Positions 6,061 to 60,519 of a stretch of DNA of 64,000 nt are shown here, piece by piece (the first letter of the stretch is position 1; every line of letters begins with the position of its first letter). Under the pieces are notes generated by a model. It saw only the letters and a list, made by a program, of their open reading frames with translations. It did no database searches and was not told where the DNA came from. The position numbers were made by a program, and so were the translations under genes. The DNA comes from Mobula birostris (Eukaryota): contig NC_092383.1 in assembly GCF_030028105.1 (NCBI RefSeq), positions 86,757,921 through 86,821,920 of the forward strand, in the 5' to 3' direction.

Positions 6061-6616
6061 ACACTCAGTGGCCACGTTATTGGGTACAGCACAGTAGTGA
6101 AACCCGGTGAGGTCCCCTGTTGCTGTAGCCCTCCACTTCTAGGTTCGATGAGTTTATCCATTCAGGGATACTCTTCTGCACAGCACTGTTGTTATCTGTG
6201 GCTATCTGAGTTACTGTGACCTTCCTGTCAACTTGAACTAGTCTGGCCATTCGCCTCCGACCTCTCTCATTAACGAAGTGTTTATGCCCACAGAACTGCT
6301 GCACACTCCATGTTTCTTTCTCTATTATTTTTCTCACCATTCTCTGTCAACTCCGGAGATTGTTGTGTGTGAAAATCCCAGGAAATCAGCAGATTCTGAG
6401 ATACTCAAACCAATTCATCTATCACCAACAGTCATTCCATAGTCACTTAGATAACATTTCTTCTTCATTGTGATGTTTGGTTTCAGCAACAATAGAACCT
6501 CTTGACCATGTCTGCGTGCATTTGTGCATCAAGTTGCTGGCACCTGAGTAGTTGATTAGATATTTGCACTAATGTGCAAGTGTACAGGTGTACCCAATAA
6601 AGAGTCCACTGAGTGC
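6061..6616. mobile_element. Non-autonomous Tc1-like DNA transposon remnant
   Basis: Terminal inverted repeats cactcagtggccacgttattgggtac / gtacccaataaagagtccactgagtg; second copy at ~58708-59637. Confidence 0.65.
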
Positions 6617-6689
6617 AGCAAGATCACACACCACATGCTAGTAATAGCCAGACAATACTGTATATTCTCACAAGGATTATTAAGACTGC

Positions 6690-7190: not shown

Positions 7191-7585
7191 GAGAGGAGGC
7201 CCTCATCTCAGTGACAGGGAGCTCCTTGGACAGTGTTTGCAGTCTCTCAGGATAGGCACTGGATGGGGCAGCTGAGAATCTATTGCCAGGATGCTAGAGT
7301 GAGACTGGAATCTGAAATTCACTCAGAAATGAGGAAAGATAAAAGTCAGCCACTGACAACGGCAGCTCTGATCAAAAGCAAGTCAGTGGTTGTGAGGGCC
7401 TTTGCAACATCCTGAGAACGTGATTAGGGATGATGTTATTGTTTCTGTTCTCAGTCTATGTGGTATTCATTTGTATTAATGGATGAACTGGGCATACTTT
7501 TGGTACAGTGCGGTGGCTGATTAAAATATTTTTTTGGGGTCAGTTTGAATTTACCTGTTCATTTTCTGAAGAACGTCTCCCTCAG

Positions 7586-7906
7586 TTTCAGGTGCTTTAT
7601 GGGCAGAAGATAAAGTAAGAGGAGTTGCGGGAAGAGCGGTCACAATCGATTGTCACTATGCACCAATGTACCGTTCACACACAAAGTATTGGTGCCGCAT
7701 GTGGGATCGCCAGTGTACAGTTTTAGTGGAAACAAATGGGACACAAGGACAGAGTGGAAGACGGTCAATCACAGATAACCCAGGGCCGGGAATATTTACT
7801 GTTACTGTGGAGGATCTTCGCTCTGGAGATACAGGGTGGTACAGATGTGGAATTACAACATCTGGCAACAAACCAACATTTGTCGTACATCTACGAGTCT
7901 CTGACA
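7586..7906 (+). CDS. Gene A exon: V-type Ig domain (CD300/pIgR-like)
   Basis: ccctcag|TT TCA GGT GCT... to GAC A|gtaagt; 321 nt, phase 1-1; TIDCHY, KYWC-x6-C (second disulfide typical of CD300/pIgR/TREM), DTGWYRC. Confidence 0.93.
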
Positions 7907-10900
7907 GTAAGTTTCTCAACAATTGAATTTATGTCCCCCACTGAAATGTCTGATCTATGGAAGGGCCATGGCATCTCCGGTCTGCCAAGGCTCCACAACA
8001 GTGCAGAGACTTGTGAGGTGTGGGCAGGGGTCGAGAAACCTCACTCATGTTGTCTGACCCACTGACTGGCCAGTGATTTCCACTGGGAGGCTCAGCACAT
8101 TATTCTGTCTCAGAACTGTATGAAATGTCACCCTGTCAGAATTTTGCATTCAGACTAAAACTAATAATTCAACAGTAACAGATCGATAAGAAACAAGTGA
8201 TGATCATGGTCTAAATACCTCGAAAATTATAAAGAGTTAATCAGCCCCCAGAGAACAATAGACAGTGTTCAGTTCTTAGAGGGAAGGCCAGCCTGCTCCC
8301 CACCCCTTCCTCAGGGATGATTCAATTCCTCCCCCACCTTGCTGTCTCTTACACCATGCCCCCGCTCCCAGAAGATATTACTCCCTGTACTCAGGCTGCC
8401 TTCCTGAGAGGCCACAGTCAGAGTGGATCAATAATAGCATGTCCTCCTCACCAACAATAAACACAAGCACATCTCAAATGTGTGTGTTTGGTCCTCTGCT
8501 CTACACACGTGACTGTGTGGCTCAGTTCCGCTCAAATGCCATCTATAAATTTGCGGATGACACCACTGTTGTTGGTAGACGAGTAAGCATACAGGGGTGA
8601 GTTGGATCAGCTGGTTGAGTGGTGTGACAGCAATAATTTTGCACTTAACGTCAGCAAAATCAAGGAAATGATTGCGGACTTTCAGAATGGGAAGTCAGGG
8701 GAACACATACTGTCACATGTTCATCATAATAAATTTGATTCTAATTCAGATTCTTTGCATCCAGTTCACTTCTGGTGAGAAATATAATTGTAAACTGGCT
8801 CCCTGCAGCTGAGAGAGTTTGTAGCCCTGATTTTCACACCGACACATTTTTGTTATCATTACTGCTGTCCTGATCTGAAGACCTTCTATGTTCTGGGATA
8901 ATGGCAGACGTGGTAGATCGGGTAGCTAGGAGGATATAGAGACACTGAGAAGTAAATGAGCTGGTGAGATTCCAAAACGGTGAGCTCTGGCTGAGATACA
9001 AAAATGGTGAAATTAGAGAGTGATTGATTTTTGATGTTTACTCAGTGTCTAAATATTTGATCCTTTTCCGCAGAACCCGTATCTGTTCCGGTACTTGGAT
9101 TTCTGTCAGCTCCAAACGATTCACATCTTGCGGATTCAGCATCAATGTCATGTGAGTCTGTCCAGGGATCCCTTCCCATTCAATACTCATGGTATGAAAA
9201 GACACCATCTATGGATTCAAAGATCTCAAACACCAATGAACTGGATCTACATTGTCAACCTTTCAAACACCAACTCTATCAATATTACTGCAAAGCCACA
9301 AATATTCTTGGAACAAAATCCAGTGAAATGGTGAACATATCCATCTACAACAGAGGAGGGAAGTACAAGTATCTGATGGAATTGAGTCACGGGGGTAAGT
9401 TGTGGAGGGAGTGACTCCTTTGGGTGAACACTGTGGTGTAATTGAATGTGTGGTTTGTAATGAATGTTATATTCTTAGACTTGTATTTGTCTCCACCATG
9501 AAGTTTCCTGCTGAGAATGGAATGCCCTAACAGTCAGTAGCTGAGAAGTCCGTCCTTCACCAGAGAGCAATGTACCTCCAGCTCGCTCTAGCTGAATATG
9601 GTGGCTTTGTGTTTAAACTACTGACTGAGATTTTCTCATCTTTGAGAAGCAGTAAATAACCAAATATGCTCTTTCTAGATCTGTAAACATTTTCCTGTAG
9701 TGTATTTATTCTATAGAAAATAGGCAATCTAAAAAGCCTCTAGAAACCTCATGCAGTTAGTATAAGAACTCAAGATACTTGCAGTAGCAGGCCATTTCGT
9801 CTCTTATTTGAAGGACTGATCTATCTCAGGTTTCAACTCTTCTTCCCACAGTTCTCCATTCTTTGTCTATAAAAATGATTATCTACTTTCTCTTTAAGTA
9901 CCCCCTTTGATTCAGCATCACAACCTCCCATGTGGAGAATTCCAGAGATTGTGAACAAGTTCCTAAGCACCTCAGTTTTGAATCACCATCTCCTTGTGAT
10001 GAGAGTCCTTGATGTGGATGAATTGGACCCATATACTGGGATATCTGGAAGAAGGTTTGGATCTGAGCTCAAAACAAACACTAGACAAAATCACTTGTAG
10101 GCTTATGATTGAACACCGAACCTCATTTCAGCTGTTCCTTGAACACTCAATCCTTGGTGCCCAGAATATGATTGGCAATAACTGGGTCAGTCCTGAATCT
10201 TTAAAGGGGCCACACCACCTATCCACACTCTGGGGAGTTAGAGCTCCTAAACCTCGGAAGCTGGCACAGATGGGTGTGTTGTAATCTTAACCTTGTTAAT
10301 ATGTTACAGATCCTCTAACAAATGTAAACACTTTGGCATCTTCTCTGTGACGCCCCTAAGGATCTTCCCCAGCAACACTGGTGTTCAGTAATGCACAGGA
10401 AATATGTGTGAAGGCAATCATTTTTCACTCAAGGCATGAGTTTCCACTTGTCAATCATGTACTCCTGCTTGGGTGCATTTGGAAAACACGTGAGACTGAA
10501 TTTTCTTTCCTTGTTTCAACAGGACGTGAATATTCATGTGAAACATTTACAACAGCGTCAACTGCAAGGTAAACCACTTGATCCAGTTTTGCTGAGAGTA
10601 CAATGTTCTCATTGCTGGTGCTATGATTGACCCTTTCTAATATTATGCTGTCTCTCTGTGATCAATCATTTTGAATCTTCTCTTCTTCTTGCACACTTTA
10701 TCTACCAAATCTCTATGCCCAGCCACTCAACATCTGTTTTTTTCCTTAATGCATTAACTTGTTTTTCTTATCAGGATAAAGTGCATTTTATTGTTGTCAC
10801 TTCTTTTTGCCTTTCATAAATGCTCTAGTTAATTTATCTCACATTTGCTTCAATTTGCAAAGACTTTTATTGGCTTTTAGATGTGTTATGAAATTGTTGA

Positions 10901-13051
10901 ACTTAATTCCTCCAACCCCACATAAACACTAGTCCAGAGAGCAATGAGTTTTTTTTCTGATCACCAAAGATTATCTTTCTCAGTTCTATATTCATTTGTT
11001 ATGTGCCATGTTGTATGACATGCACGATCACGGTCTTTCCATAACCATGATTGTTCTTGGCAAATTTTTCTCCTGAAGTAGTCTGCTATTGATTTCTGCT
11101 GGGCAGTGCCTTTATAAGATGGCTGACCCAGCCATTATCAATTACGCTTCAAAAATTATCTGGCTGGTGTAAGTGGTCGCATTACCAGGACTTGTGATAT
11201 GCACCAGCTGCTCATACAACTATCCACCACCTGCACCCATGGCTCCACGTGACCCTGATTGGTGGGGGTGGTGTGGGGCGAAGCATGTTCTTTATCTGGC
11301 CCATGGTGATCTGCAGGCAAGCGGTGGGCTGGAATACTTTATAGCTGCTTTGGTAGAGACATATTTCCACCCTGGCACCCTAAGTTATCCATCTTAAGTT
11401 TTCTGAAGCAACAACCACAAAATGCTGGAGAAAATCAGCAGACCAGGCAGCTTCTATGGAAAAGAGTCAACAGTTGATGTTTTAGGGAGAGACCCTTTAT
11501 CAGGACTGGCAAGAAAGAGGAGAAGTCAGAGTAAGAAGGTGGGGAAAGAGGAGGAAAATGTACAAGGTGGTAGGTGATAGGTGTAACAGAGTGAGGGGAA
11601 GGAGGGGAAGGGTAAAGAGTTGGGAAATTGATTGATGAAAGAGATAAAGGGCTGGAGAAGGTGGAATCTGATAGGAAAGGGCAGAAGACCATGGAAGAAA
11701 TGGAAGGGGAAGGAGCACCAGTGGGAGGTAATGGATAGGTAAGGAGATAAGGTGAGAGATAGAAACAGGAATGGTGAAATGTGAAGTGGGGGAGGGCAAT
11801 ATCCAGAAGTTTGAGAAATCAATGTTCGTGCCATCAGGTTGGAAGCTACCTGTTCAGAATATAAGGTGTTGCTCCTCCAACCAGAGTGTGGCCTCATCAC
11901 AACAATAGAGGAAGGAGGCTGTGGACTGACATGTCCCAATGGGAAAGGGAAGTAGAACTGAAATGGGTGGACACTGGGAGATCCAATGTTCTCTGGGGGA
12001 CGGAGCATAGGTGCTCTGCGAAGCAGTCTTCCAATCTACGTCAGGTCTCACTGATATACATGAGGTGACACCGGGAGCACCGGACACAGTGAATGACCCC
12101 CAACAAACTCACAGGTGAAGTGTCACCTCAGCTGCTGGGACTGTTTGGGGCCCTGAATGGTAGTGAGGGCAGGGTGTAGGGGCAGGTGTGGCACTTGCTT
12201 GTGATTCTAATTTGTCTGCATGATTTCATGTCCCTTCTCCCTTTCGCCATCAGTCACACGTCATTTATTATCTTTCACATCTATCCGCATGGATTCTATC
12301 ACTGCCTTCCCTACGGCAGTGTCCGCTTCCTTCAATTGTATTTCTTTATCATTGTCGCACCTCTGCACTTCACTATTTCCTTCTCTTCCTTTCCAAAATT
12401 TATTTTCACTTTGCAATTTCTGATTTACAGTCCTCATTTTTGTGCAGTCATGTCCCAGTAATGAGGTCTGTAACTGATGATCAGAGGTTATTTTATCATT
12501 CACTCTGTCGAACACTCATTTCGCCTCCTGCTTGAACTCCCCTGGCTCAGCTGCTTTACCTCACTCCACTCCACTGAGATTACAGCAGAAACACAAAGCC
12601 ACCTCATTTCCTCGCACTGATTCTATATCTCTTCCCCTTTGCTCAGTTTCATGATATGGAAGGTGGGTCGTTGGGTGCTCTTCGCTCTCCTGATGATCAG
12701 CACGATTTCAGTCATGTGGTTCACAAGAGAAACGAAGGTAGGCTTATGGACATCAGTGAAATCGCTTTCAAATATACTGTCCATTTGAGGAAAAACATTT
12801 AAATACATGAGTCTCTTCTTATCCTATGGTAAAACCATACTTTATGCAAATGAGATGGCTCAGCTTTGACATGGTCTCTTGTGTGTAGAATGACTGATGT
12901 ATGTATGGAATGCTACTTTCAGACAGAATTCCATTGTGAGTGGCCATCTAAACTAAAGCATTGTTGAAGAATCTGATGAGTTGACCATTGCCTTTTGCAG
13001 AGACGTGATGAATCTGATCTTTTCAGCCTGATGGTCCAGGAGGTAAAGTGA
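7586..13051 (+). CDS. Gene A (5'-partial): CD300/pIgR/MDIR-like activating-type Ig receptor; exons 7586-7906 (V), 9074-9394 (C2), 10523-10568 (stalk), 12647-12737 (TM), 13001-13051 (cytoplasmic, stop)
   Basis: All five exons have AG/GT boundaries and join in frame (phases 1,1,2,0): ...SGALWAEDKVRG...VSD-K-PVSVP...LSHG-G-REYSCETFTTASTA-S-FMIWKVGRWVLFALLMISTISVMWFTRETK-RRDESDLFSLMVQEVK*. No family-type leader exon was found upstream within the window. Confidence 0.85.
9074..9394 (+). CDS. Gene A exon: C2-type Ig domain
   Basis: ttttccgcag|AA CCC GTA... to GGG G|gtaagt; 321 nt, phase 1-1; PVSVP, SCES, IQYSWY, YYCKATN motifs. Confidence 0.92.
10523..10568 (+). CDS. Gene A exon: short stalk (GREYSCETFTTASTA)
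   Basis: Polypyrimidine tract ttttctttccttgtttcaacag|; ends GCA AG|gtaaac; phase 1->2, exactly what is needed to link the C2 exon to the phase-2 TM exon. Confidence 0.75.
11415..12200 (-). mobile_element. Penelope-like element 3' part (GIY-YIG endonuclease remnant)
   Basis: The minus strand encodes a degenerate '...DEATLWLEEQHLIF..GS.QPDG.NID' GIY-YIG C-terminus followed by a CT-rich tail; shorter tail copies at ~19640-19740, ~51600-51965 and ~61840-62285. Confidence 0.7.
12647..12737 (+). CDS. Gene A exon: transmembrane segment with charged Arg (FMIWKVGRWVLFALLMISTISVMWFTRETK)
   Basis: ccctttgctcag|T TTC ATG... AAG|gtaggc; hydrophobic helix with CGT (Arg) at 12669-12671. Confidence 0.82.
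13001..13051 (+). CDS. Gene A terminal exon: short cytoplasmic tail RRDESDLFSLMVQEVK*
   Basis: ccttttgcag| phase-0 acceptor; TGA at 13049-13051; ATTAAA at 13134-13139 is a candidate poly(A) signal. An internal donor (GAG|gtaaag, 13043) cannot be excluded. Confidence 0.65.
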   Translation, partial: RRDESDLFSLMVQEVK

Positions 13052-16960: not shown

Positions 16961-17056
16961 AGGAGTCAGAGAACCACACAGCATGAACTGAATAGATCAC
17001 ATTTCAATTAATATCTAACAATTTGACCAGGTGAACAATCATACGGCAGATTTATA

Positions 17057-17612
17057 AACCCAAGAGATTCTGCAGATGCTGGAAATCCAGAAAAACACAC
17101 ACAAAATGCTGGATGAGTTCAGCTGGTCAGGCAGCATCTATGGAAAGGAATAAGCAACTGATGTTTCAGGCTGAGACCCTTCATCAGGACTGGATTATGA
17201 GGACATGTTGTGGAACATTGTGAAAAGAATACAACCTCACCCCTTCTTCTTCTTCTATTCCCCACTCTGGCTTCTTACCTCTTCTCAGATGCCTTTCACC
17301 TCCACCTAGATTCCCTCCCCCTTCCCCTTCTCCTATGGCCCACTCTCGTCCCCTATCAGATTCCATTCTGTCCAGCCCTTAATTTATCCTACCCACCTGG
17401 TGTCACCTATCACCTTTGAAATATTCTCTTTTCCCTCCCCCCATATTTTTTTATTCTGGGGTCTTCCCCTTTCCTGCCCAGTCCCGTAGAAGGTTCACAG
17501 CTGGAAATATCGGCTGTTTATTCATTTCCATAGATGCTGCCTGACCTGCTGAGTTCCTCCAACTATGTTGTTTATGTTACCTCGGAATTCCAGTATCTGC
17601 ATAATTTCTTGT
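17057..17612. repeat. Inverted pair of Penelope-type tails (~130-bp imperfect terminal inverted arms)
   Basis: Left arm gattctgcagatgctggaaatccag...aaaatgctggatgagttcagc is the reverse complement of right arm gctgagttcctccaa...ggaattccagtatctgcataatttc; the same architecture occurs at ~26205-26620. Confidence 0.6.
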
Positions 17613-18484
17613 TGTAATACTGAACATTGTGGAATTGGAAATTTCCATTAGCTGAGAAGGTGAGTGAGGGTGTGCTGGGTTAGAGGTGAGAGAGAACATA
17701 GGGGGCAATAGATACTGTACGTGTAACCTGTCCAAATTCTGTCCTGTATCATTCTATGAGAAATACTTAAGCGACTCACACAGACCACTTGCTGTCAAAA
17801 TGGATTTGATTTGACTCAAGGACAGAGCTGACATGGATTTTACCACCGTGATAATGTGTAATGTGTAATTCGATCGACTATTTCACCCCAATACTGAACC
17901 GAAGTAAAGTGAAATCCCATCGTAGCTTTTGAAATTACACTGATCAATACAATGTATTTCAGAAGAGGTGAGTTTAAAAGTTGCCTCAAAAGATCTGACA
18001 CAGTGTTCAATGCAAATGAAGCCATGTATTGCATGCTGAGTTTGTTGCATGAAAGGCCCCTTCTACGTCATGTCTGCTCCCTGCATTGCCCTCGAGAGGC
18101 AGGTTCTCCAAAACAGATTTGACTGAATTATCACCAAGGCAGATCCAGAAGGATATGCAAATCTTGGAGTGCAGGTCCATAACACTGTGAAGGTGGCAAC
18201 ATAGACAGATGTAATTTTGGTGGTAAAGCAACCTTCAGTCAGGACATTAACCAAAAAAGTTATGAATGCATGTAACAGCTGTATAAAACTTTGCTTAAGA
18301 CACATTTGGAGTATGTGCATAGTTCTGGTAGCTACATAATGGGAAAGGTGCAAACCTTTCAGGGGAGCAACTGAAGAAAAGGTTTGCTTGCTTATTTCCT
18401 GGATGAGAGCATGTAAGTTGCATGCAGAAGTTGTATAAACAAGGATTGTTTTCTCTGGAGACTGATCAATAGGAATTTTTTTTA

Positions 18485-18610
18485 TTTTGTGAAATATAAC
18501 TATGAGTTTTTCATATTGTCACATATCACACTTCATTTGGTTTGCTATGGTTTCAAAATTGGACTTCCTGCTCCTTCCTTCCTTATTTTGATCTGACAGT
18601 TATTTTCACA
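18485..18610 (+). promoter_or_regulatory. Degenerate duplicate of the gene B proximal promoter (ETS site kept, RUNX sites mutated)
   Basis: aaatataactatgagtttttcatattgtcacatatcaca...ggacttcctg...acagttatt aligns with 28110-28225; ACTTCCTG at 18563-18570. Confidence 0.65.
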
Positions 18611-18863
18611 ATGTCCACTCTCTTATTTACACAATGATCCCTCTCCACTCAGATTCTATGTAGGGTCTTGACCCAAACCTTCGACAGTTCTCTTCCCCCT
18701 GACAGACGCTGCATGGCCTGCTGAGTTCCTGTGGGAGTTTTCTCTGAATTCCAGTTTCCAGCATCTTTGGTGTCTACAAATAATCACGCACTTTTCTGGA
18801 AATGATGCATGACCCCCAAACTGAAATGGATTATGAAAATCTCCCATACCGGTTGTCACTCAC

Positions 18864-18900
18864 TGGGTAGGAAATGAATTAGAAGAATCAAAATCCACAT
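18864..18900 (-). pseudogene. Inverted orphan leader exon MWILILLIHFLP(I), paralogous to the gene B leader
   Basis: The minus strand reads aaaacaATG TGG ATT TTG ATT CTT CTA ATT CAT TTC CTA CCC A|gtgagt. It aligns codon for codon with gene B ATG TGG TCT TCG ATT ATT CTG ATT GGT TTC CTA CCT G|gtgagt, and the flanking intron sequence is also homologous. No Ig exons lie downstream of it on the - strand in this window. Confidence 0.85.
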
Positions 18901-18944
18901 TGTTTTATTTGCAGATACCAGGTCAGCACTGGTCTGTTCACAGC

Positions 18945-20830
18945 GTTCTGAATGAGGTAGCTGAAGAGATTGTGGAAGCATTAGCAGTGATCTTCCAAAC
19001 GTGGTTCCAGAGGACTGAAAAAATACAAATGTCAGGCATCATTAAGAAAGGAGGGAGACAAAAGTGGGATATTATAGGCAAATTACTGACTTCAGTGGTT
19101 GGTAAGATGTTAGAATCTATTATTAAGGCCTGGATGGTGGTTCATAAATGATAGGTGCTGTTTTTGCTGCGACAATGCTCCTTGTAAGTGTGCTCAACAG
19201 TGAGGCGGGGGGGGGGAGGGGGCTTATCTGCGATGAACTGGGCTGTATCCACCACCTTTTGTAGGTTTTTCTGTTCAAGGGCATTGGTGTTTTTATACCA
19301 TGCCATGATGCAACCAGTAAGAATGCTCTCCACAGTGCATCTATAGATCTTTGTAAAAGTTTTAGATGGCTTTTTGTTCTTTGCAAACTTCCAAGGAAAT
19401 AAGGCACTGTCATGCCTTCTTTGTAATGGCAGTTAAGTGCTGGACCCAGGGCAGATCCAAAGAGGTTAATGTTACTGACTCTTCCCACCTCTGGATCCCC
19501 TGATGAGGACTGGCTCATGGACCTCTGGCTTCCTCCTCCATGGTCAATAATCGGCTCTTTGGTTTTGCTGATGCTGAGTGAGAGGTGGTAGTTGTGACAC
19601 CATTCAGTCAGATTTTCAATCATCCTCCAACATGCTGATTGAAGACATACAAATGCTGAAGGAACTCGACAATACAGGCAGCATCTATATAAAAGAATAA
19701 GCAGTTGATATTTCAGGCTGAGACCCTTCATTGAACCCATTTTCAGGTCAGGGACCCCTCCTCAGATCTGGATAAAAAGTGGAAGACTGTCAGTTTAGAA
19801 AGCAGATCTTGTCAGAGGAAAGATGTGTAAGTTAAAAGACGATACAGTTCTGTCTCAGGTGATGAAACCCTGATTTATGGACACTTCTACATATGAACAA
19901 GACTCTGTAATATTACTTAATTCAAAAGTCCAATGTATGTCTATGTACATATATCTACTCATGACATGAAGATTGTCGATGTTGTGGATGGCACAGACGG
20001 TTGTTGAATGTTACGACAGGATAAAGACAGGATGCAGTGCTGGGTGGAGAAGTGGTAGATGGAGGTTAACACCGCAAAATGTGAAGTGATACATTTTGGA
20101 TGATCAAACTTGAAGGTTAATGGCAGGATTCTTAATAATGAGGAGGAATCGAGGGATATTGGGGCCCAAGTCTGTGGTAGATTCCTCCAATTTGCTGTGC
20201 AATTTGAAAGGTTGGAAAAGAAGGTGTATGAGGTGTTGGAATTCACTAGTCAAGGGGATTGAGTTCAAGAGATGCAAGGTAATGTTACAGCTCTATAAAC
20301 CTCTGGTAGGGTCACACTTGGAGTATTGTGCTCGGTTCTGATTGCTTCATTGTAAGGATGTTGTTGAAGTTTTAGGAACAGTGCAGAGGAGGTTTACCAG
20401 GATGCTGTCTGGATCAGAGAACATGTCTCATGAGGAAAAGTAAAAGTTGAGTCAGCCAGTGATTTTCTCTTTGGAGCAAATGAGGATGAGAGGTAAATTG
20501 GTAGAGAAGTGTAGAAGAGGAGTATAAGACATAGATTGAGTTGACAACCAGCACTTAATTCTCATCCATTTATGATGAGTGGAGGAAAGTTTAGGGGAGA
20601 TGTAAGAGGTAGAATTTTTTTTTACACAGAGTGGTGGGTCCCTGCAACACACTGCAGGCATGGTGGTAGAGGCTGATACAATAGGGATACTTAGAGGCTC
20701 TCAGGTGGGCAAATACATATATGTATGAAAATATAGGGTTATATGCTGTGTAGGATGAAAGGATTAGATTGATCATGGGATATAGATTAGCACAACACTG
20801 TGGGGTGAAGGGCCTGTACTGTGCTGTATG
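18945..20830. mobile_element. Mosaic of CR1 (+; ~18945-19130 and ~19960-20830) and Rex-like (-; ~19130-19640) fragments
   Basis: 'VLNEVAEEIVEAL', 'LQLYKPLVGSHLEYC' and 'MESILTGCIMAWY' motifs. Confidence 0.65.
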
Positions 20831-22955: not shown

Positions 22956-25394
22956 TGAGGAACAGGATTTCTTGGAATGTATGCGGGATGGTTTTCTGAA
23001 CCAACATGTCGAAGAACCAGCTAGAGAGCAGGCCATTCTAGACTGGGTATTCAGCAACGAGGAAGGGTTAATTAGCAATCTTGTCGTGAGAGGTCCCTTG
23101 GGTAAGAGTGACCATAATATGGTGGAATTCTTCATTAAGATGAAGACAGACATAGTTAGTTCAGAAACAAAGGTTCTGAACTTAAAGGGTAACTTTGAAG
23201 GTATGAGACGTGAATTAGCTAAGATAGACTGGCAAATGATACCTAAAGGGTTGATGGTGGATACACAATGGCAAGCATTTAAAGATCGCATGGATGAACT
23301 ACAACAATTGTTCATCCCAGTTTGGCAAAACAATAAACCAGGGAAGGTAGTGCACCCTTGGCTGACAAGGGAAATTAGGGATAGTATCAATTCCAAAGAA
23401 GAAACATACAATATAGCCAGAAAAAGCGGCACACCTGAGGACTGGGAGAAATTCAGAGTCCAGCAGAGGAGGACAAAGGGCTTAATTAGGAAAGGGAAAG
23501 AAGATTATGAGAGAAAACTGGCAGGGAACATAAAAACTGACTGTAAAAGCTTTTATAGATATGGGAAAAGAAAAAGACTGGTTAAGACAAATGTCGGTCC
23601 CTTACAGTCAGAAACAGGTGAATTGATCTTGGGGAACAAGGACATGGCAGGCCAATTGAATAACTACTTTAGTTCTGTCTTCACTGAGGAGGACATAAAT
23701 AATCTTCCAGAAATAGTAGGGGACCGAGTGTCTAGTGAGATGGAGGAACTGAGGGAAATACATGTTAGTAGGGAAGTGGTGTTAGGTAAATTGAAGGGAT
23801 TAAAGGCAGATAAATCCCCAGGGCCAGATGGTCTGCATCCCAGAGTGCTTAAGGAAGTAGCCCAAGAAATAGTGGATGCATTAGTGATAATTTTTCAAAA
23901 CTCTTTAGGTTCTGGACTAGTTCCTGAGGATTGGAGGGTGGCTAATGTAACCCCACTTTTTAAAAAAGGAGGGAGAGAAAAAACAGGGAATTATAGACCG
24001 GTTAGCCTAACATCAGTGGTGGAGAAAATGCTAAAGTCAGTTATCAAAGATGTGATAACAGCACATTTGAAAAGTGGTGAAATCATCGGACAAAGTCAGC
24101 ATGGATTTGTGAAAGGAAAATCATATCTGACGAATCTCATGGAATTTTTTGAGGATGTAACTAGTAGAGTGGATAGGGGATAACCAGTGGATGTGGTATA
24201 TTTGGATTTTCAAAAGGCTTTTGACAAGGTCCCACGCAGGAGATTAGTGTGCAAACTTAAAGCACATGGTATCGGGGGTATGGTATTGATGTGGATAGAG
24301 AATTGGTTGGCAGACAGGAAGCAAAGAGTGGGAATAAACGGGATCTTTTCAGAATGGCAGGCAGTGACTAGTGGGGTACCGCAAGGCACAGTGCTGGGAC
24401 CCCAGTTGTATACAATATATATTAATGACTTAGATGAGGGAATTAAATGCAGCATCTCCAAGTTTGCGGATGACATGAAGCTGGGCGGCAGTGTTAGCTG
24501 TGAGGAGGATGCTAAGAGGATGCAGGGTGACTTGGATAGGTTAGGTGAGTGGGCAAGTTCATGGCAGATGCAATTTAATGTGGATAAATGTGAGGTTATC
24601 CACTTTGGTGGCAAAAACAGGGAAACAGATTATTATCTGTATGATGGCCAATTAGGAAAAGGGGAGGTGCAAGGAGACTTGGGTGTCATTATACACCAGT
24701 CATTGAAAGTGGGTATGCAGGTACAGCAGGCGGTGAAAAAGGCGAATGGTATGCTGGCATTCATAGCAAGAGGATTCGAGTACAGGAGCAGGGAGGTTCT
24801 ACTGCAGTTGTACAAGGCCTTGGTGAGACCACACCTGGAGTATTGTGTGCAGTTTTGGTCCCTTAATCTGAGGAAAGACATTCTTGCCATAGAGGGAGTA
24901 CAAAGAAGGTTCACCAGATTGATTCCTGGGATGGCAGGACTTTCATATGAAGAAAGACTGGATGAACTGGGCTTGTACTCGTTGGAATTTAGAAGATTGA
25001 GGGGGGATCTTATTGAAAGGTATAAAATCCTAAAAGGATTGGACAGGCTAGATGCAGGAAGACTGCTCCCGATGTTGGGGAAGTCCAAAACGAGGAGTCA
25101 CAGTTTAAGGATGAAGGGGAAGCCTTTTAGGACCAAGATGAGGAAAAACTTCTTCACACAGAGAGTGGTGAATCTGTGGAATTCTGTGCCACAGGAAACA
25201 GTTGAGGCCAGTTCATTGGCTATATTTAAGAGGGAGTTAGATATGGCCCTTGTGGCTAAAGGGATCAGGGGGTATGGAGGGAAGGCTGGTACAGGGTTCT
25301 GAGTTGGATGATCAGTCATGATCATACTGAATGGCGGTGCAGGCTCGATGGGCCGAATGGCCTACTCCTGCACTTATTTTCTATGTTTCTATGT
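22956..25394 (+). mobile_element. Young 5'-truncated CR1; ORF2 nearly intact, with an in-frame TAA at 24181-24183
   Basis: ORFs 22972..24183 and 24187..25302 are in the same frame; RT motifs; (ttctatgt)n tail. Confidence 0.95.
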
Positions 25395-28109
25395 GATCTG
25401 ATGAATACCTTCTAAAGCCTCAGTTCTTGGATAACTTCTCAACACCGAATGAAAAATGTTTTATAATCCCACCGTTATCCCACCGATTGGGATTAACCAC
25501 AATGTTTAGACACAATGGCTAAGTGGCCTTTTCACTTTTCTTCACCAGACTCTTATTGTTGTTCATTGCTCTAGTTGCAGAAACAAAAATGCTTTGCTGA
25601 AGATGTTTTGTAACTCTGCACTTGTTCACATCAGTATATTGCACAATAGTCTTTGAGAAATTTTCCAAAAAGTGATGGAGCAATGCAGAAAGAGACGGGA
25701 ACTTCTTTCAGTGTATAGCAACCACTGGTACTTCTCCATATTCTGTTAAGTCAAGTAAAAAGGATAGAAGTTCTAAGCACATCAATGTGTAATTTTTGTA
25801 TTTTAAAGTATACAGTATATGTCTGACTATGCATCTTTGCAACAATAATTTCCTTCGGGATAAATAAAGTTTTAGCTTTCCTTATCTTAACCTCTCTAAT
25901 CCTTCACTGAAGGTGAACATTACACAGTTGACAGCAGTGACTGATGCAATAAACTCAGCACTCATACTATGCAATGTACAGAATTTAAGCAGATATAAAT
26001 TCATGGCTAATATGCTGCACTGTTTCCCCCTAGGACAAATGTAACAAACCCAAAGTAACAAAAGCTCTCTGTGTAAACTGAATTATTTTATCTTTTATCT
26101 ATTTCTAAACAATTGCAAAGTCAGCAACAAAAATTCAGGACAAAATAAATGAGCCACATTCTTGGATCACCTCAACCCTCACACTACAATGAAATCAAAA
26201 GCAAAACATACAAAATGCTGGAGGGACTCAGCACATTAGGCAGCATCTATGGAAATGAATAGATAGTCAAGATATCAGGCTGCTACCCTTACTTACCTCC
26301 TCTTCTCAGCCTGTTATTTCCCCCTGGGTCCCATCCTCCTTTTTCTATGGTCCACTCTCCTCTCATATCAGATTCTTTTGTTTCTAGCCCTTGACCTTTC
26401 CCACTCACCTGTCTTTACCTATCACCTTCCAGCTAGCCTCCTTCCCTTCCTCCCAGGCTTTTTATTCCAAAACATTCTTCCCTCATTCTCAGACCTGAAG
26501 AGGGGCCTTGGGCCAGAATGTAAGTTATCTATTCTTTTCCATAGATGATGATGCCTGGCCTGCTGAGTTCCTCCAGCATTTTGGGTGTGTTGATTTCCAG
26601 CAAATACAGATTTTCTTGCATTTGCTATGAAATCAGAATTGAGCAATTAACATTTTTAGTTAAGCTTCAAGATGCCGCCAATATGTGGCGATTCTCCAAA
26701 CAGCTCCAATGGGAATCATCAAATATTCCCATTTAGGACAACTGCAGCTAATTTACCAACATACAGTATGCCGGTGATATTAAACCTAATTCTGTATTAC
26801 TCCTCCAATATGTGTGACACGTGAGAAGTGTTTTCACTTGTACTGAAGCTCTCCTCAGACTTCATCTGCCCTAGGAATCACGCAGCATGAATCTGGATTA
26901 ATCACACTTCGACTGACGTTGAAAGATCTAACCAGGTGAACAGGGATATTGGGAAGCTAGCAACTGAGAATCTGAGCAAAGGTATGCAGGGTTGGGGTAT
27001 AGAATTGATGTTTCTTTCTGAGACCCTTCATCAGGTCTCATGTCGTGGTTCTCTCGTGTCTCATTTTGATTGAATCATCACCAAGGCAGGTTCAGAGTAA
27101 TGTACAAATCTTGGACTGTAAGTCCATAACTCCCTGAGATTTGGAACAGAGGGAGATGGTAAAGTAGGTGTTAAAGAGAGCTTATGGATTTGGATGAACA
27201 TTTAACATTCAAGAATTCGTGTTGCAGAAGAAACTCATCAGATTGGTGGTTGTACAACAAAAGACATAGGAGCAGAATTAGGTCATTCTTCCTTTAGAAT
27301 CTATCCTACCATTTCATCCTGGCTGATTTAATTTACCTCTCAACCCCATTTCCTACTTTTTCCCTGTAACCTTTGATGTCTTTTCTAACCAAGAACTTAT
27401 CAACCTCTACTTTAAATATATCCAATGACTTGGCCTCCACAGCTGTCTGTGGCAGTGAATTCCACAGATTTATCATCGCATGTCTAAAAAAATTCTTTCA
27501 TCTCTGTTCTATAGGAATGTACTTGTACTCTGAGGCTGTGCCCTCTGGTCCCAGACTCCCCTACTACAGGAAACATCCTCTCCACATTCTCTCTATCTAA
27601 GCCTTTCAATATTTAATAGCGTTCAATAAGAACCCCTCTCATTCTTATAATCTCCAGTGAGTACAGTCCCAGAGCCATCAAATTCTCTTCTGGACAGTAC
27701 TAGTGGTGAGGTATCTTTCAATCTCAGTCACAACACTCAACATGGGCTCTTTCCCTTTCCACCGTTAAATTTTCACCATGAACATTTTTCCCAATGACTC
27801 ACCACAGCTAACATTTTAATCAAGCAAAAAATAAAATTTAGACCATAAGACCATAAGATTTAGAAGCAGAAGTTGGCCATTTGGCGAATCAAGTCTGCTT
27901 CTCCAACTTCCGGAGGAACATGGTGAATCAGGTGGAATCTACAGAGGCAGAGTGATCAACATTTCAGATTAATCTCCTGCTTCGGGAAACCTTCCAGCCA
28001 TTTATTGTTCCATCCGATCAAATCATTTGCTGTTGCTTGCACCTACCATTTTAAAACTTCTCACCATTTCATTCAGTCTTGGGGAATTGTTTAAATGTTT
28101 CTGTATTGC

Positions 28110-28267
28110 TAAATGTAACTGAAAGCTTTTCAGATTGTCACATACCACACAGCAGTTGGGTCACTGTGGTTTTTTTGATCAAACTTCCTGCGACTTCTTC
28201 TTCCATTTTATTTCACAGTTATTTCTCTCTGAGGACAGATAGATCCAAGCTGGATCCTGTGAGTAAA
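28110..28267 (+). promoter_or_regulatory. Putative TATA-less haematopoietic promoter/5'UTR of gene B
   Basis: RUNX motifs ACCACA (28144-28149) and TGTGGTTT (from 28165) and an ETS motif ACTTCCTG (28183-28190) lie ~80-120 nt upstream of the ATG; the block is conserved in the duplicate at ~18.5 kb. TSS not known. Confidence 0.5.
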
Positions 28268-28307
28268 ATGATGTGGTCTTCGATTATTCTGATTGGTTTC
28301 CTACCTG
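28268..28307 (+). CDS. Gene B leader exon MMWSSIILIGFLP(V)
   Basis: gtaaaATGATG... CCT G|gtgagt (strong donor, phase 1); completes the signal peptide with VSGA from the V exon. Confidence 0.88.
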
Positions 28308-31300
28308 GTGAGTGACAACCAGCGCTGTACATTCGCATAGTCATTGTTGGTTTGGGGGTCGTACACTGTTTCCACAACAGTGCTTGAATACCTGTAGGCA
28401 CAAAAGATATTGGAAAATGGAGTTCAGAGTACACTCCTGGAGGAACTCATCAGGCCAAGCAACATCTGTCATGGGGACAGGAAATGACAACAGTTTGGGT
28501 TGAGACCCTGCATCAAGTGTGAGTGGAGAGAGAGATAGTGTACATAGGAGAGGGGGAGGTGTGAGACTGGGTCCACTAGGTGGTCAGGAACTGAAGGGAG
28601 GTGAAGCACAACAGACAAATGCAATGGGGAGGGAAAGGGGTGGAGTTTGGAGATAGGTGAAAGGTGGAAGCAGATAAAGAGAAAAGGTGAATAGTGTGGA
28701 GCCAGGTGGGGAGAGAATATGTCCAGCTGGAGAAATCTTCCAGAGGCTGTTAAGTGGGAATATCAGGTCTACCTTTGCTGGAATCTTATCTCACTCTGCA
28801 GGGATCACTATGACAACTGACGTTATTGTCTTGAAATCAGTGTCTTCCCTGGGGCATTTCAGCGGGGCAATTAGTAAAGAACATTACCAAATCTGGAGTC
28901 AAAGGTAAACCAGGGTGTGTAGATTTCTGTTCTGAAAGGCCTTTCCGATCCAGATGGCATTTTGTCAGTCTGGTAGTTGATCATTATCATTATTGATATG
29001 TGTTTTAAACCAGAAATAATTAATAAATCATCTACTTAAACTCTCAATATATCCTTACAGAAATTGAAATTGCACCTGAATTTCTAGACACTAAGTAGTA
29101 ATGACCACTGTTACACTACCTTCTAATTACACAGCGAAATACTTGATAGGTACAAAATATAAAGTTTCCATCAGAACCAGAGGGCCTGGTTTTAGACATT
29201 ATGAGGGGTTTCTTTCTGCAGTTTATAAACTTGCCTGTAAGTGAGGAGTAAATCAGGACACCAGCCTAATGGAGAGAATTGAAACATGATCTCAAGTGAT
29301 CCTATTGACCTCATCTCAATAGGTTTCAATAGGTACATTTAATGTCAGAGAAATGTATACAATGTAAATCCTGAAATTCTTTTTCTGAGCAAACATCCAT
29401 AAAAACAGAGGAGTGCCTCAAAGAATGAATGACAGTTAAATGTTAGAACCCCAAAGACCCTCCCCAACTCCCCCCTCCTACGCATAAGCAGCAGCAAAGC
29501 AAAGACACCCCCAACAGCAAAAAAAAGCATCACCACCCCCCACTGAGTACTCAAGCGTGCAGCAAAGCATTAATAAAGACACAGACTTGCAGTACCCCAA
29601 AGACTATTCGTTCACCTGGTAATTTAACATACCACAGGCTCTCTCTCTCTCCCTAACAAGGGAAAAGAGGTGTCCCTGTTTCACAGGTAGAAGGGAGACA
29701 TAACAAAGCGACTCACTGATTTATGGTGTTAAAAGTCTGTTGCGTTGTATTTTCCAAGCCCTGTGCCCAAAAGGCTCGGGCCTCTGGGCACACAACCTGC
29801 AGCCAGCTCGCCGCTTACGATCTTCCGTGTACTCCCACAACGCAAGAGCCTTGAATCCGCCTGCCTCCAGAGCCACGAAAAGCCGGCACCCTGAAGGCAC
29901 GCTGATCTTCCAGACTGCATCCTTGGCATATCGAAAAGCGACCAGTCATGAGGCCCCAAAAGTGGGTCCTATTTCTGCCAAGAACTGAATTGAGAGGGGA
30001 AAAAAAGAGCTATCAAAAGATAGAAATAGAGATGTTTCCAAAATGCAAGCAAAGGAGTTGCCATTAGGCTCCTCCTCCAGTTCCAATTTCCTGGAACCTG
30101 AGACACACACACACAAAAATCTGGGAGTATTCCAAATTAATCCTTTGGGAACTTTGTGTACATTTGAATGGGTGATAGGAGGTAATTGAAAGTTCAACAC
30201 TGCGGCTCTCCCTCAGTACTACACTGGAAGGTCAGCCCTGGGTTTCTGCTCAGGACTCTGGAGTGGGAAGTGAACCCACAATGTACTGACACAGGGGAGA
30301 GAGCACTGACACAGCTGACACAGTAACAGCACTGACTGCACTTCACACCAAAACCATTGGCTGTGGAAACATGTGCCACTTGCTGGACGTGACCTGGACG
30401 GGTCTTTAATTGTCATGTTGAAAAATATTAGTTTGCTTTAATCGTTCCTTTCCCCTCAAATCTGAAAATACCTCCCTCAGTTTCAGGTGCATTGTGGGCA
30501 GAGAAATATGTAAAAGGAGTTTTGGGAAGAGCGATCACAATCGATTGTCACTATGAAGAAAAGTACCGCTCACGCAAAAAGTATTGGTGCCATGGATGGA
30601 CTCATCAATGTTCAGTTTTAGTGAAAACAAATGGACAACATGGATGGAGTGGACGAGTGTCAATCACAGATAACCTGGAACAGAGAATATTTACTGTTAC
30701 TATGGATGATCTTCATTCTGGAGATACAGGATGGTACAGCTGTGGAATTGCAATACGAGGTGCCGATCAGATATTTAATGTACACCTACAAGTATCTGAA
30801 GGTAGGTTTCTCAGTGATTGACCTTCTGCCTTCAGCAAAATAAATGTCTCATCTATGTTTCCTCTGTGAAGGATTTTCAGATGTTCATTCAGTGTCTGAT
30901 TGTTGAATTCCTTCCCACAGAACCTGTTTCTGTTCCTGTGCTTCGATATCTGTCACCAGCCAATGTCTCCCGTCTTGGGGGCTCAGTGTCAGTTTCCTGT
31001 GAGTCTCTCCAGGGATCCCATCCCATTCAGTACTCATGGTATGAACAAACCTCATCTGGGCATCCAAAGATCTCAGATACCAATGAACTGGCTCTACATT
31101 GTCAATCCTTCAACCAGAAGCACCATCAATATTACTGCAGTGCCTTGAATTGGCATGGAGCAAGATCCAGTACAATGGTTAATGTGGCAGTCTTCAACAA
31201 CGGAGAGATCTGCAGTTATGTGACAGAAATCAATGGCATCAGTAAGTTCTACTTTCAAGAGAGGATACATTTAAATATTTCTTTTTGTTACTCTGTTACT

Positions 31301-37300: not shown

Positions 37301-40300
37301 AAATTTGACAATTCTTTCCACTGTCCACCACGCTACAGTGTCAGCTGAAACTTATTAATCATGTGACTTACATTATCATAACAAATTATCAATATCGATG
37401 ACAAATAACAGTGGTTAATGAATAATAGCACTGATCCCTATGACATACCACTCGTGATAAAGTCTGGTGTTGTCAGACATCACGATCACAACCTGATCAC
37501 TTCTGCCAAGCCTATTCAGTACTCATTCAGTTAGCTTACACTGTGATCTCACATTACAGTGGATGTGCTCTATATGGATCTGTGTGGGCACGTGGCCAAG
37601 TGGTTAAGGCATTGGACTAGCGACCTGAAAGTCGTGAGTTCGAGCCCCAGCTGAGGAGAGAAGGTTTACAAGGATGTTGCCGGGACTTGAGAAGCTCAGT
37701 TACAGAGAAAGGTTGAATAGGTTAGGACTTTATTCCCTGGAGCGTAGAAGAATGAGGGGAGATTTGATGGAGGTATGTAAAATTATGATGGGTATAGCTA
37801 GAGTGAATGCAAGCAGGCTTTTTCCATTGAGGCAAGGGGAGAAAAAAACCAGAGGACATGGGTTAAGGGTGAGGAGGGAAAAGTTTAAAGGGAACATTAG
37901 GGGGGGCTTCTTCACATAGAGAGTGGTGGGAGTATGGAATGAGCTGCCAGACAAGGTGATAAATGCGGGTTCTTTCTTAACATTTAAGAATAAATTGGAC
38001 AGATACATGGATGGGAGGTGTATGGAGGGATATGGTCTGTGTGCAGGTCAGTGGGACTAGGCAGAAAATGGTTCAGCACAGCCAAGAAGGGCCAAAAGGC
38101 CTGTTTCTGTGCTGTAGTTTCTATGGTTTCTATGGTTTCTGAGGCAACGTGTTGTGTCCTTGAGCAAGGCACTTAATCACACATTGCTCTGCGACGACAC
38201 TGGTGCCAAGCTGTATGGGTCCTAGTGCCCTTCCCTTGGACAACATTGGTGTCGTGGAGAGGGGAGACTTGCTGCATGGGCAACTGCTGGTCTTCCATAC
38301 AACCTTGCCCAGGCCTGCGCCCTGGAGAGTGAAGATTTTCCAGGTGCAGATCCATGGTCTCGCAAGACTAACTGATCTATATGGATTTTTGTAAGGCATT
38401 AGGCAAGGTTCCACATGGTAGGCTTATTCAGAAAATCAGAAGGCATGGGATCCAGGGAAGTTTGGCCAGGTGGATTCAGAATTGTCTTGCCTGCAGAAGG
38501 CAGAGGATCGTGGTGGAGGGAGTACATTCGGATTGGAGGGTTGTGACTAGTCCCACAAGGACTGGTTCTGGGACCTCTACTTTTGTGATTTTTATTAACG
38601 ACCTGGATGTGGGGGTAGAAGGGTGGGTTGGCAAGTTTGCAGATGACACAAAGGTTGGTGGTGTTGTAGATAGGGTAGAGGATTGTTGAAGATTGCAGAG
38701 AGACATTGATAGGATGCAGAAGTGGGCTGAAAAGTGGCAGATGGAGTTCAACCCGGAGAAGTGTGAGGTGGTACATTTTGGAAGGACAAACTCCAAGGCA
38801 GAATACAAAGTAAATGGCAGGATACTCGATCGTGTGGAGGAGCAGAGGGATCTGGGGGTACATGTCCACAGATCTCTGCAAGTATCCTCACAGGTAGATA
38901 GGGTAGTTAAGAAAACTTATGGGGTGTTAGCTTTCATAAATCGAGGGATAGAGTTTAAGAGTCGTGAGGTAATGATGCAGCTCAATAAAACTCTGGTTAG
39001 GCCACATTTGGAGTATTGTGTCCAGTTCTGGTTGCCTCACTATAGGAAGGATGTGGAAGCATTGGAAAGGGTACAGAGGAGATTTACCAGGATGCTGCCT
39101 GGTTTAGAGTGTATGGATTATGATCAGAGATTAAGGGAGCTAGGGCTTTACTCTTTGGAGAGAAGGAGGATGAGAGGAGACATGATAGAGACATACAAGA
39201 TATTAAGAGGAATAGATAGAGTGGATAGCCAGTGCTTCTTCCCCAGGGCACCACTGCTCAATACAAGGGGACATGGCTTTAAGGTAAAGGATGGGAAGTT
39301 CAAGGGGGATATTAGAGGAAGGTTTTTTACTCAGAGAGTGGTTGGTGCGTGGAATACACTGCCTGAGTCAGTGGTGGAGTCAGATACACTAGTAAAATCT
39401 AAGAGACTACTAGACAGGTATATGGAGGAATTTAAGGTGGAGGGTTATATGGGAGGCAGGGTTTGAGGGTCAGCACAACAATATGGGTCGAAGGGCCTGT
39501 ACTGCGCTGTACTATTCTATGTTACAGATCAGTCTACAATGCAAGATCTTGCCAAAGGCCTTGCTAAACTCCATGGGCTAAGCACTACTGTCCTGCTCTC
39601 TTCAGTCCCTTTGATTATCTCTTCCAAAAAACTCAGCCATATTTGTTTGAAAGAGGATGTCCCATGCACAAAATCACATAGACCATCCCAAATCAGATCT
39701 TGTTTTTGGCAAATTCAGGTAGATCCTGTCTTACACAATCACCTCCAGTAAGTTACCCACCACTGATCTTATGCTCACCTACCTGGAATGGGACTGGATC
39801 AGTAATCTATTGACTCAGAAATGTGGAAACACACTGAGACATTAGTGAGCAGTGACAATCCTGACTCCAATCAAATAAAAATCATTACTTGTGAAGAGCT
39901 GTGAGCACGAGATGAGGGACGATGCTGTTGTCTTCTCAGTCTATGTGGAATTCAATTGTATCAATTGACAGTGTGGCAGATTCCTTAGAACACAGTGATA
40001 GCTTTATATAAAATATCTTTATTTATCATTATTATGTTCTTTATCTTTTGTGTTTTTGTGCTGCATTAAGCCAGGGTAACAATGATTTCATTCTCTTTTA
40101 CACTTGTGCGCTGGAAATGAGATTAAACAATCTTGAATCTAGAATCTAGAATCTGCTTGTGTAAATTTGATTTTACCGGTCCATATTCTGAAAAATTTCT
40201 CCCTCAGTTTCAGGTGCTTTATGGGCAGAAGATAAAGTGAGAGGAGTTGTGGGAAGAGCGATCACAATCGATTGTCACTATGCACCAATGTATCGCTTAG

Positions 40301-58661: not shown

Positions 58662-60519
58662 GCTTGATAAAGTAACTATGTGAATGAATTAAGGCAGAAG
58701 AGTTGCGCTCAGAGGCCACCTTATTAGGTACACCTGTTGATGCTTGTTAATGAAAATATCTAATCAGCCAATCATGTAGCAGCAACTAGATGCATAAAAG
58801 TACGTATGTCAGTGTGCTCTGCATTGAAAAGTGTTCTTCTGCACACCACTGTTGTAACACATGTTTATTTAAATTACTGTCACCTTCCTGTCAGCTTGAA
58901 CCAGTCTGGCCATTGTCCTCTATAAGACCTCTTTATTTAATCTTTCTTCTGGTTCTTCTGGGAGTCAGGAAGGATGTGCATCTTAATTCTAATGATTGTT
59001 TATTTTAAACTACAAACAAACAGACAAATACAAAGCAAACTAAATTAAGAGCTGAGTAACAAAGTAAGAGGTAAATGAACAGCAAAGAATACAAAGGCAA
59101 AAAGATGGCACCTCTGAAAAATCCATTACTTTTATAGCTAAGTAGAATTCCTTATAGAGAAAAAATGGCTTAATACAATACATAATTGAAACAATTACCT
59201 CACGTGGGTAATGTGCTAATATTTACCCAGTGAAAAATGAGAAAGATGATAAACCATGAGTTTAACTGCTATACCGCTTTCTGCCAATGAGTGGGGACAA
59301 ACCAGCACATATGGTGAAAAATACCTAAGTTTTTTAAAAAGTACAGATCTTATAGAAAGTATTACTTTAAAAATGCAGTGGTTTCCAACACCTCTGACCT
59401 CTCTCAGTAACAAGGCATTTGCACGCATAGAACTGCCACTCACTGGATCTTTTTTTTGTTAATCGCTTATGTCACATTTCTTCTCCATTCCAATGTTTGG
59501 TCTGAACAACAACTGAACCACTTGACCAGATCTGCATGCTTTTATGCATCGCATTGCTACCACATGATTGGCTGATTAGGAATTTGCGTTATGAGCAGGT
59601 GAACAGGTGTACCCAATCGAGTGGCCACTGAGTGTAACTCTTTTGCTTTAATCTATCCACATAATTACTTTGTCAAGCTTTTTTCTGAGCTGCTTCTTCC
59701 ACCCAGGCCCCTTTCTAGCTCCTCTTCATCAGCAAGTATGAACTATTGGAAATGAGGGTCTGAGTCTAGATCTCTCTGTGTTACTGCCCGTTCAGCTGCT
59801 GGCATTTTGGGCACCAATGAATGTCCTCCATCTCTGGTGGTGTTCAGGGCTTCCTTCATCATGTCAGTAGCTTCCTCTCAGTTTTCACTCTTGGTAACTG
59901 GGCAAATCCCAGGTTGAGAATCAGCAATACCATCTCACTCAGATGCAGAAGGACTCTTCATTGCTGTTTCTATAAAGTTTTGTTTTACCTGTCAGGGTTG
60001 TTAGCCCTGAGCTAAAACCCCAAACCTGGAGGACCGGTGGACCACTCTTAGTCTGGCCTCTACACTTTGACCTGATTGGCAAGGATAACCCTACCAAGAG
60101 ACAAAGCATAGCTCTCTGGGTCACTGAGGCACACAAGCCTCCAAACCTTGACAAGGTTGTGGTCCTCTTGGAGGCTAGATCACCTCTACAAATGTCAAAA
60201 TGCCCTTGCTCCTCTTTCTGAGTTCTACAATATTCACTCAAGACACACCCTCCTCAGTCATAACTTTTTTCACCTATTTAAATGCTAACAAAGTGATTAT
60301 CATGTTCCAATTATGCAGAGCCCTGGTAAGTCTGCATCTGGACCATTTTGTGTTTCTTTCCACCTGAGGAAGGATACAGTTACAATGGATTGAGTACAGC
60401 AAACTTTTCCCAGAAGGATTCTTCGGATTTTGAGTTTGTTATATAATGAGAGATTGCTGTATGAGACTGACTGGAAATCTACTCTCTCACCTTTTGAGGC
60501 AAATTCAGCGAAACAAAGA

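Follow-up and report, generated by a model that had tools for sequence, protein, structure and literature searches.

A flipped leader exon in a ray immune-receptor cluster as the probable relic of a lost paralog, with an apparently active orphan promoter

The short inverted segment that parts a receptor leader exon from its promoter in the stretch of ray DNA analyzed here (the window, 64,000 nt; all coordinates are positions in it) is most likely what decay has left of the 5' end of a paralog now lost from a tandem array of MDIR/CD300-like receptor genes, a remnant that was flipped in place and has become fixed, and the promoter half of which is probably active. That the stub might be left over from a deleted third receptor had been offered, as a secondary reading, in a first-pass annotation of the sequence, and the homology, the absence of V and C2 exons and the unspliced state of the exon all fit this proposal. 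In the sequence of events that the homology indicates, a segmental duplication copied the upstream region and the promoter together with the 5'UTR, the leader exon and the first part of intron 1, after which 332 bp of the copy (18611-18942), starting ~85 nt inside the 5'UTR, were turned over where they lay. To the right of the flip, where the rest of intron 1 would be expected, a LINE fragment and other transposon pieces are found, with no V or C2 exon after them. The promoter half would have outlived its gene and would now drive a plus-strand non-coding RNA that crosses the flipped exon in antisense and runs on into transposon debris.

The window takes in a section of a cluster in which Ig-superfamily receptor genes follow one another in tandem, without exception on the plus strand; gene B is used throughout as the reference paralog. 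Domain matches place the Ig exons as follows:

7585-7905, 30481-30800 and 40208-40527, plus strand: V-set exons.
9073-9384, 30921-31241 and 46679-47002, plus strand: C2-type Ig exons, one after each V-set exon.

The V domains are CD300/pIgR-like, and a protein library search found hundreds of multi-domain relatives. An orthologue-type gene model of 597 aa (P0013), taken from a related genome, can be followed along gene B in the order leader (28271-28306), V, C2, V, C2, stalk (52743-52826) and tail (58404-58658); the gene B leader matches its residues 1-12, and the tail carries tyrosine motifs of the form Y-x-x-L/I. RNA contigs join the first V exon (V1) to C2 (30799 to 30919/21, GT..AG) and the end of the first C2 exon (31241) to the second V exon (40208), and from these joints together with the exon order it follows that gene B is a V-C2-V-C2 receptor. 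The same architecture is known from the "modular domain immune-type receptors" (MDIR) of skates, which are related to CD300, TREM and pIgR (PMC3031540). Judged by its predicted domains, the cluster is of this MDIR type, CD300/pIgR-like V-set domains alternating with C2 domains ahead of a TM region and an ITIM-bearing tail. In RNA the V exons are spliced at the upstream of two tandem acceptors (ccctcag/tttcag/, slashes marking the cuts), which yields ...LP-V-SGALW; both acceptors are retained by all three V exons, and a homologous gene model (P0017) uses the downstream one.

Homology between the stub and gene B was established by self-BLAST of the window (blastn) and by alignments. The parts that correspond are:

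18118-18228, plus strand: upstream block, similar to the gene B 5' flank at 27065-27176 (blastn, 75% over 112 positions, E 7e-15).
18479-18610, plus strand: direct half, with the core promoter and the first ~85 nt of a gene B-type 5'UTR (blastn).
18611-18942, minus strand: inverted segment, with the remaining 5'UTR, the leader exon and the first ~250 nt of intron 1 (blastn and alignments).
18662-18730, plus strand: SINE-like repeat core, within the intron part of the inversion (blastn).
28098-28563, plus strand: reference copy in gene B, with promoter/5'UTR, leader exon (ATG at 28268/28271, donor after 28307) and the start of intron 1.

The direct half matches gene B at 28098-28224 (18479-18605, plus strand, 72.3% over 130 positions, E 5e-11) and the inverted segment matches it at 28555-28264 (18615-18907, minus strand, 74.4% over 293 positions, E 5e-49). 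The first-pass annotation had taken 18485-18610 for a paralog of the proximal promoter of gene B and ~18610-18945 for the reverse complement of its 5'UTR, leader and intron 1 start, and both assignments are borne out by these matches. A second colinear block lies further upstream (17319-17611 against 26330-26618, 68% over 300 positions, E 5e-20), and the two colinear upstream blocks mean that the duplicated piece took in at least 1.2 kb 5' of the promoter. When the alignment is read in gene B coordinates, the direct match stops at about 28224-28228 and the inverted match starts at about 28229-28236, ~8 nt apart, with no sequence lost or duplicated at the breakpoint on the gene B side. Since the two matches abut, an in-place inversion of ~332 bp (18611-18942) is indicated; an abutting breakpoint is what such a flip would be expected to leave and would hardly result from the chance joining of unrelated fragments. 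On the left, colinear homology reaches up to the inversion, and on the right the expected continuation (gene B from 28564 onward) is absent and a LINE fragment is found instead.

It could be argued that the two halves never belonged to a single gene end, and that template switching, or the use of filler DNA in repair, brought an inverted copy of some other paralog beside a promoter fragment by chance. The neighborhood, a patchwork of truncated fragments (LINE pieces at 18945-19128 and 19123-19740), would suit such an origin, as would a 23-nt duplication at the left junction and a second small inverted exon copy at 55016-55098. We nevertheless consider it unlikely, because the two halves abut in gene B coordinates without loss or overlap and are about equally diverged from gene B (72% identity in the direct half and 74% in the inverted one).

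The SINE-like part had been noted before as common to both copies. It is real but small (core ~18662-18730), and the repeat alone was rejected as the cause of the inverted match because its core makes up ~70 bp of a continuous alignment of 293 bp, the homology to gene B extending well past the core on both flanks. Other copies of the core are found in the window at 51844-51908, 11429-11496, 17532-17558 and 26552-26572 (blastn), and DNA contig depth is very high over 18655-18768, a stretch that spans the core. As regards the 5' flank, DNA contigs of 1402 and 1410 nt from two species match 18121-18328 at ~88-90% and then diverge; they are nearer to the stub than is the gene B copy (75%), which points to a closer paralog of this flank elsewhere in the genome.

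The junctions of the inversion and the sequence to its right contain the following features:

18600-18645, plus strand: imperfect 23-nt tandem duplication over the left junction (18600-18622 and 18623-18645, 19 of 23 positions; repeat search).
18945-19128, plus strand: internal LINE fragment, from just before the reverse transcriptase domain into it, touching the right junction (BLASTP).
19123-19740, minus strand: second truncated LINE, to the right of the LINE fragment.

A repeat search revealed no inverted repeat with arms at ~18611 and ~18942. The hexamer ttcaca does occur at both junctions (18605-18610 and 18937-18942), as had been pointed out, but it is a direct repeat, and in 3.5% of random trials in the window two points spaced 332 nt shared a 6-mer no more than 8 nt away. 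Direct repeats cannot mediate an inversion. The left ttcaca and the junction itself lie within the 23-nt duplication, so that the breakpoint is not placeable to the base. The LINE piece at the right junction (~186 bp) matches a LINE open reading frame at 22972-24183 (BLASTP, E 9e-11), which, like the next reading frame, matches RVT_1. Other genomic copies of this LINE family extend past 18941 and 19128 (loose contig ends), from which it follows that the piece has been cut on both sides. There are, then, three unrelated joints inside 520 bp, and we infer from this arrangement that the breaks may have been made by imprecise break repair or by (serial) template switching rather than by a recombinase. 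No recombinase is evident in the window, the nearby reading frames being pieces of LINE reverse transcriptase.

The inversion is present in the animal, and an error of assembly has virtually no probability left: contigs of four independent short-read-type runs (two of DNA and two of RNA, another species and two RNA samples included) span both junctions and extend for 31 nt or more to either side of them. In the same-species DNA run a single 854-nt contig, at 18121-18974, is free of differences; no other contig covers the unique parts, and its depth equals that of the flanks. The DNA run of a second species contains a single 856-nt contig of the same span and orientation with 23 substitutions and 2 indels (~2.7%, or ~97.3% identity), while the RNA contigs that span both junctions come from two runs on other samples. 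The shared orientation in the DNA contigs of two species rules out not only an assembly artefact but also a recent origin. The inversion is fixed and predates the split of the two species, of which, at the DNA level, one individual each was sampled, the cross-species evidence being one contig of one relative. It should also be noted that contigs drop minor variants and that a low-frequency or somatic un-inverted form could escape in this way. The earlier suggestion of a recent or polymorphic inversion is thus not sustained, a single orientation being seen in the contigs of the two species and in the two RNA samples. The duplication itself must be considerably older: the stub differs by ~25% from gene B and by ~2.7% between the species, from which it can be estimated that the duplication is ~10 times older than the species split.

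Within the flipped segment the leader exon can be read as follows:

18864-18900, minus strand: relic of a leader (signal-peptide) exon, MWILILLIHFLP plus 1 nt (phase 1), read from the sequence.

The first reading of this exon proved correct in that it keeps its ATG (18900-18898), an open frame up to its end at 18864 and a phase-1 A/GTGAGT donor (GTGAGT at 18863-18858, with the GT at 18863-18862). Compared with the N-termini of homologous proteins, its peptide is a typical leader of the family that fits the pattern M(M)W..ILLI..LP/VSGALW, and the 20-nt block of leader end and donor has 2 occurrences only within the window. What could not be upheld is the description of the exon as intact amid markedly diverged surroundings. 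In alignments with gene B the exon shows 28/37 identical nt (75.7%), and the values of its surroundings are much the same (5'UTR 75%, non-repeat intron 72%, SINE-like part 79%). Conservation above the neutral flanks (72-79%) was therefore not found relative to gene B, although this is a weak test with an exon of 37 nt and with signal peptides, which evolve fast. The second species differs from this one by 1 change in the 37-nt exon, which is about the flank rate; this change (18884 A>C, CTT to CGT on the coding strand) replaces Leu6 by Arg in the hydrophobic core of the signal peptide. Chance alone would leave a frame of 12 codons open in about half of all cases, and the survival of ATG, open frame and perfect donor through ~25% divergence has, by our estimate, a chance of roughly 5-10%, which is mildly unexpected for a long-dead exon, though the retained ATG and the perfect donor amount to a few positions only.

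The exon faces the minus strand, whereas all V and C2 exons lie on the plus strand and none is found on the minus strand at lower coordinates. Near the stub there is no V or C2 exon on either strand, the only ones of the window being those at 7.6/9.1, 30.5/30.9 and 40.2/46.7 kb, all on plus. Nor is the donor seen in use: the RNA contigs of two libraries (X5 and X6) continue unspliced across 18864/18863, and no splice joint at the stub is listed among the RNA runs. A contig of run X6 that departs from the genome at ~19314-19318 was considered as a splice and rejected (4 mismatches, no GT donor, continuation absent from the window); chimeric joining to a different transposon copy is the probable explanation. 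Another leader-like exon that might serve unit A or unit C was looked for in the window and not found, and an Rfam scan of 17000-20000 gave no match. We infer that the leader exon is without function, since it points away from all V exons, has diverged at the pace of its flanks and remains unspliced.

These findings bear directly on the main proposal of the first-pass annotation, an ON/OFF alternative first exon. According to this proposal the segment would be a reversible or polymorphic structural switch, in the forward state of which the exon would serve as an upstream alternative first exon spliced to V1 or V2 of gene B. The retention of the ATG, the open frame and the consensus phase-1 donor speaks in its favor, as does the seemingly active promoter copy. 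However, one orientation only is found in the contigs of two species and in the RNA of two further samples, the ends of the segment carry no inverted repeats, the exon is as diverged as its flanks and has acquired an arginine in the second species, and gene B has a leader of its own between the flipped exon and V1. Apart from V(D)J recombination, site-specific inversion is not known to act on germline genes of vertebrates. A switch is on all these grounds exceedingly improbable, and, as far as the data reach, a shared orientation and an unspliced exon are what the first-pass annotation itself had named as grounds for refuting the proposal.

What goes beyond the earlier annotation is that the region of the stub is transcribed:

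18526-19523, probably plus strand: transcribed stretch, covered by RNA contigs with 0 mismatches, unspliced.

The contigs of run X5 cover 18526-18984 (depth 27) and 18955-19523 (depth 16) and that of run X6 covers 18540-18983 (depth 17), all with 0 mismatches, so that transcription reaches at least 19523; in run X5 there is no RNA cover at 17800-18483. The contigs end at 18526 and 18540 without foreign sequence attached, which indicates the end of a transcript and not a splice acceptor. Since the introns of gene B have no cover in the same RNA runs, the signal stems from RNA and not from contaminating DNA; the four RNA libraries with stub RNA also carry gene B exons. A motif scan finds a TATA-like aaatataa at 18492-18499, ~30 nt upstream of the RNA start, and ETS-like cttcct motifs at 18564 and 18574. 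The start is at the edge of the best-conserved promoter block (18509-18531), a conserved 17-mer of which occurs in the window only here and at 28134-28150. The position of the RNA start, the TATA-like box, the conserved block and the lack of a nearby poly(A) signal on the minus strand together suggest that the orphan promoter still fires, with a start near 18520-18526 on the plus strand, and we regard this, the strand assignment included, as rather probable. The product is then probably a sterile non-coding RNA consisting of ~85 nt of 5'UTR, the flipped piece in antisense and transposon debris; the first ATG of the would-be plus-strand RNA opens just 8 codons.

It is also possible, if less probable, that the RNA at 18526-19523 is a minus-strand transcript, begun for example in the transposon debris, that contains the leader in sense, remains unspliced and ends at ~18526, the promoter copy being silent. 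The contigs carry no strand, and their depth is higher at the left (27 to 16 and 17 to 9), as it would be near the 3' end of poly(A)-selected RNA. Yet a canonical poly(A) signal is lacking on the minus strand within 18526-18600, the sole AATAAA (18486-18481) lying past the contig ends; the ends differ between libraries (18526 and 18540), as in a fading 5' end; a strong donor would stay unused; and the start coincides with the TATA-like box and the conserved promoter block. A plus-strand RNA from the orphan promoter is therefore preferred. That this RNA is stable and acts in trans, through its antisense leader-end/donor block, on the splicing or translation of the first exon of MDIR paralogs is thinkable, as is, alternatively, that micro-inversion of exon 1 is a recurrent and perhaps selected way of silencing receptors, but we give this pair of ideas very little credence. 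The flipped block of leader end and splice donor is the most conserved of the family (24 nt with 2 mismatches relative to gene B).

The invertible switches of bacteria and phages (fimS, hin/gin) have flanking inverted repeats and a recombinase, and they occur in both orientations. The stub is like them in layout only, in that a short segment lies beside a promoter and its orientation decides whether a coding start is read; it differs from them in having neither flanking inverted repeats nor an evident recombinase and in having been seen in one orientation. Much closer in kind are the fixed microinversions of vertebrates, which have been described between human and chimpanzee (PMC8755829) and in birds (PMC3123225), and for which break repair or template switching has been proposed. 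As in these, a small segment has been reverse-complemented in place, is fixed, is common to related species and has no evident recombinase. However, the "definite" cases of the human-chimpanzee study measure 17-33 nt and have flanking inverted repeats (PMC8755829), whereas the stub measures 332 bp and has none, and on its right a LINE fragment follows in place of the original downstream sequence, so that the event was more complex than a simple flip. The stub also resembles the gene fragments left by birth and death in families such as the MDIR of skates (CD300/pIgR/TREM-like; PMC3031540), being a partial duplicate with non-coding flanks among intact and partial paralogs and transposons that diverges at the neutral rate. 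It is unlike the usual fragments of this sort in that the 5' end alone survives, with the coding part flipped and the promoter part apparently transcribed. The stub is thus apparently an ordinary relic, one more fragment produced by birth-and-death evolution in a rapidly changing cluster of immune receptors, which matters little as found, with a promoter outliving its gene as the sole small twist. It provides an example of a fixed micro-inversion tied to transposon debris and of a duplicated promoter that is apparently active long after gene loss, and those who annotate such clusters should expect "lncRNA" signals of this kind.

Some further observations concern gene B and its neighbors. At 95% identity or above, the four libraries contain no RNA contig for the first exon of gene B (28145-28304), despite a depth of 70-255 over V1 and C2; this gap proves nothing and may be due to short, branch-broken contigs in a multigene family. 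A 301/302-nt RNA contig (X5 and X6) matches 28305-28389 exactly, from 3 nt before the donor, and has unlike sequence on both sides; it could represent a paralog, an antisense spliced RNA (minus strand CAG/GTAGGA) or an artefact. The small inverted exon copy mentioned above (55016-55098, minus strand) corresponds to 58520-58602 on the plus strand; it is an 83-bp copy (84%) of part of the ITIM-bearing cytoplasmic exon, located in the preceding intron. Unit A (7585-9384) has no leader in the window and no stalk, TM or tail exons after it, and may be an orphan V-C2 pair and thus another gene fragment. The sequence just 5' of its V exon (6061-6617) is paralogous to the 3' flank of gene B (58704-59634). 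Finally, right after the last coding exon of gene B there is a 146-bp inverted repeat (79%; 58657-58800 and 59539-59683) with ~740 bp between its arms.
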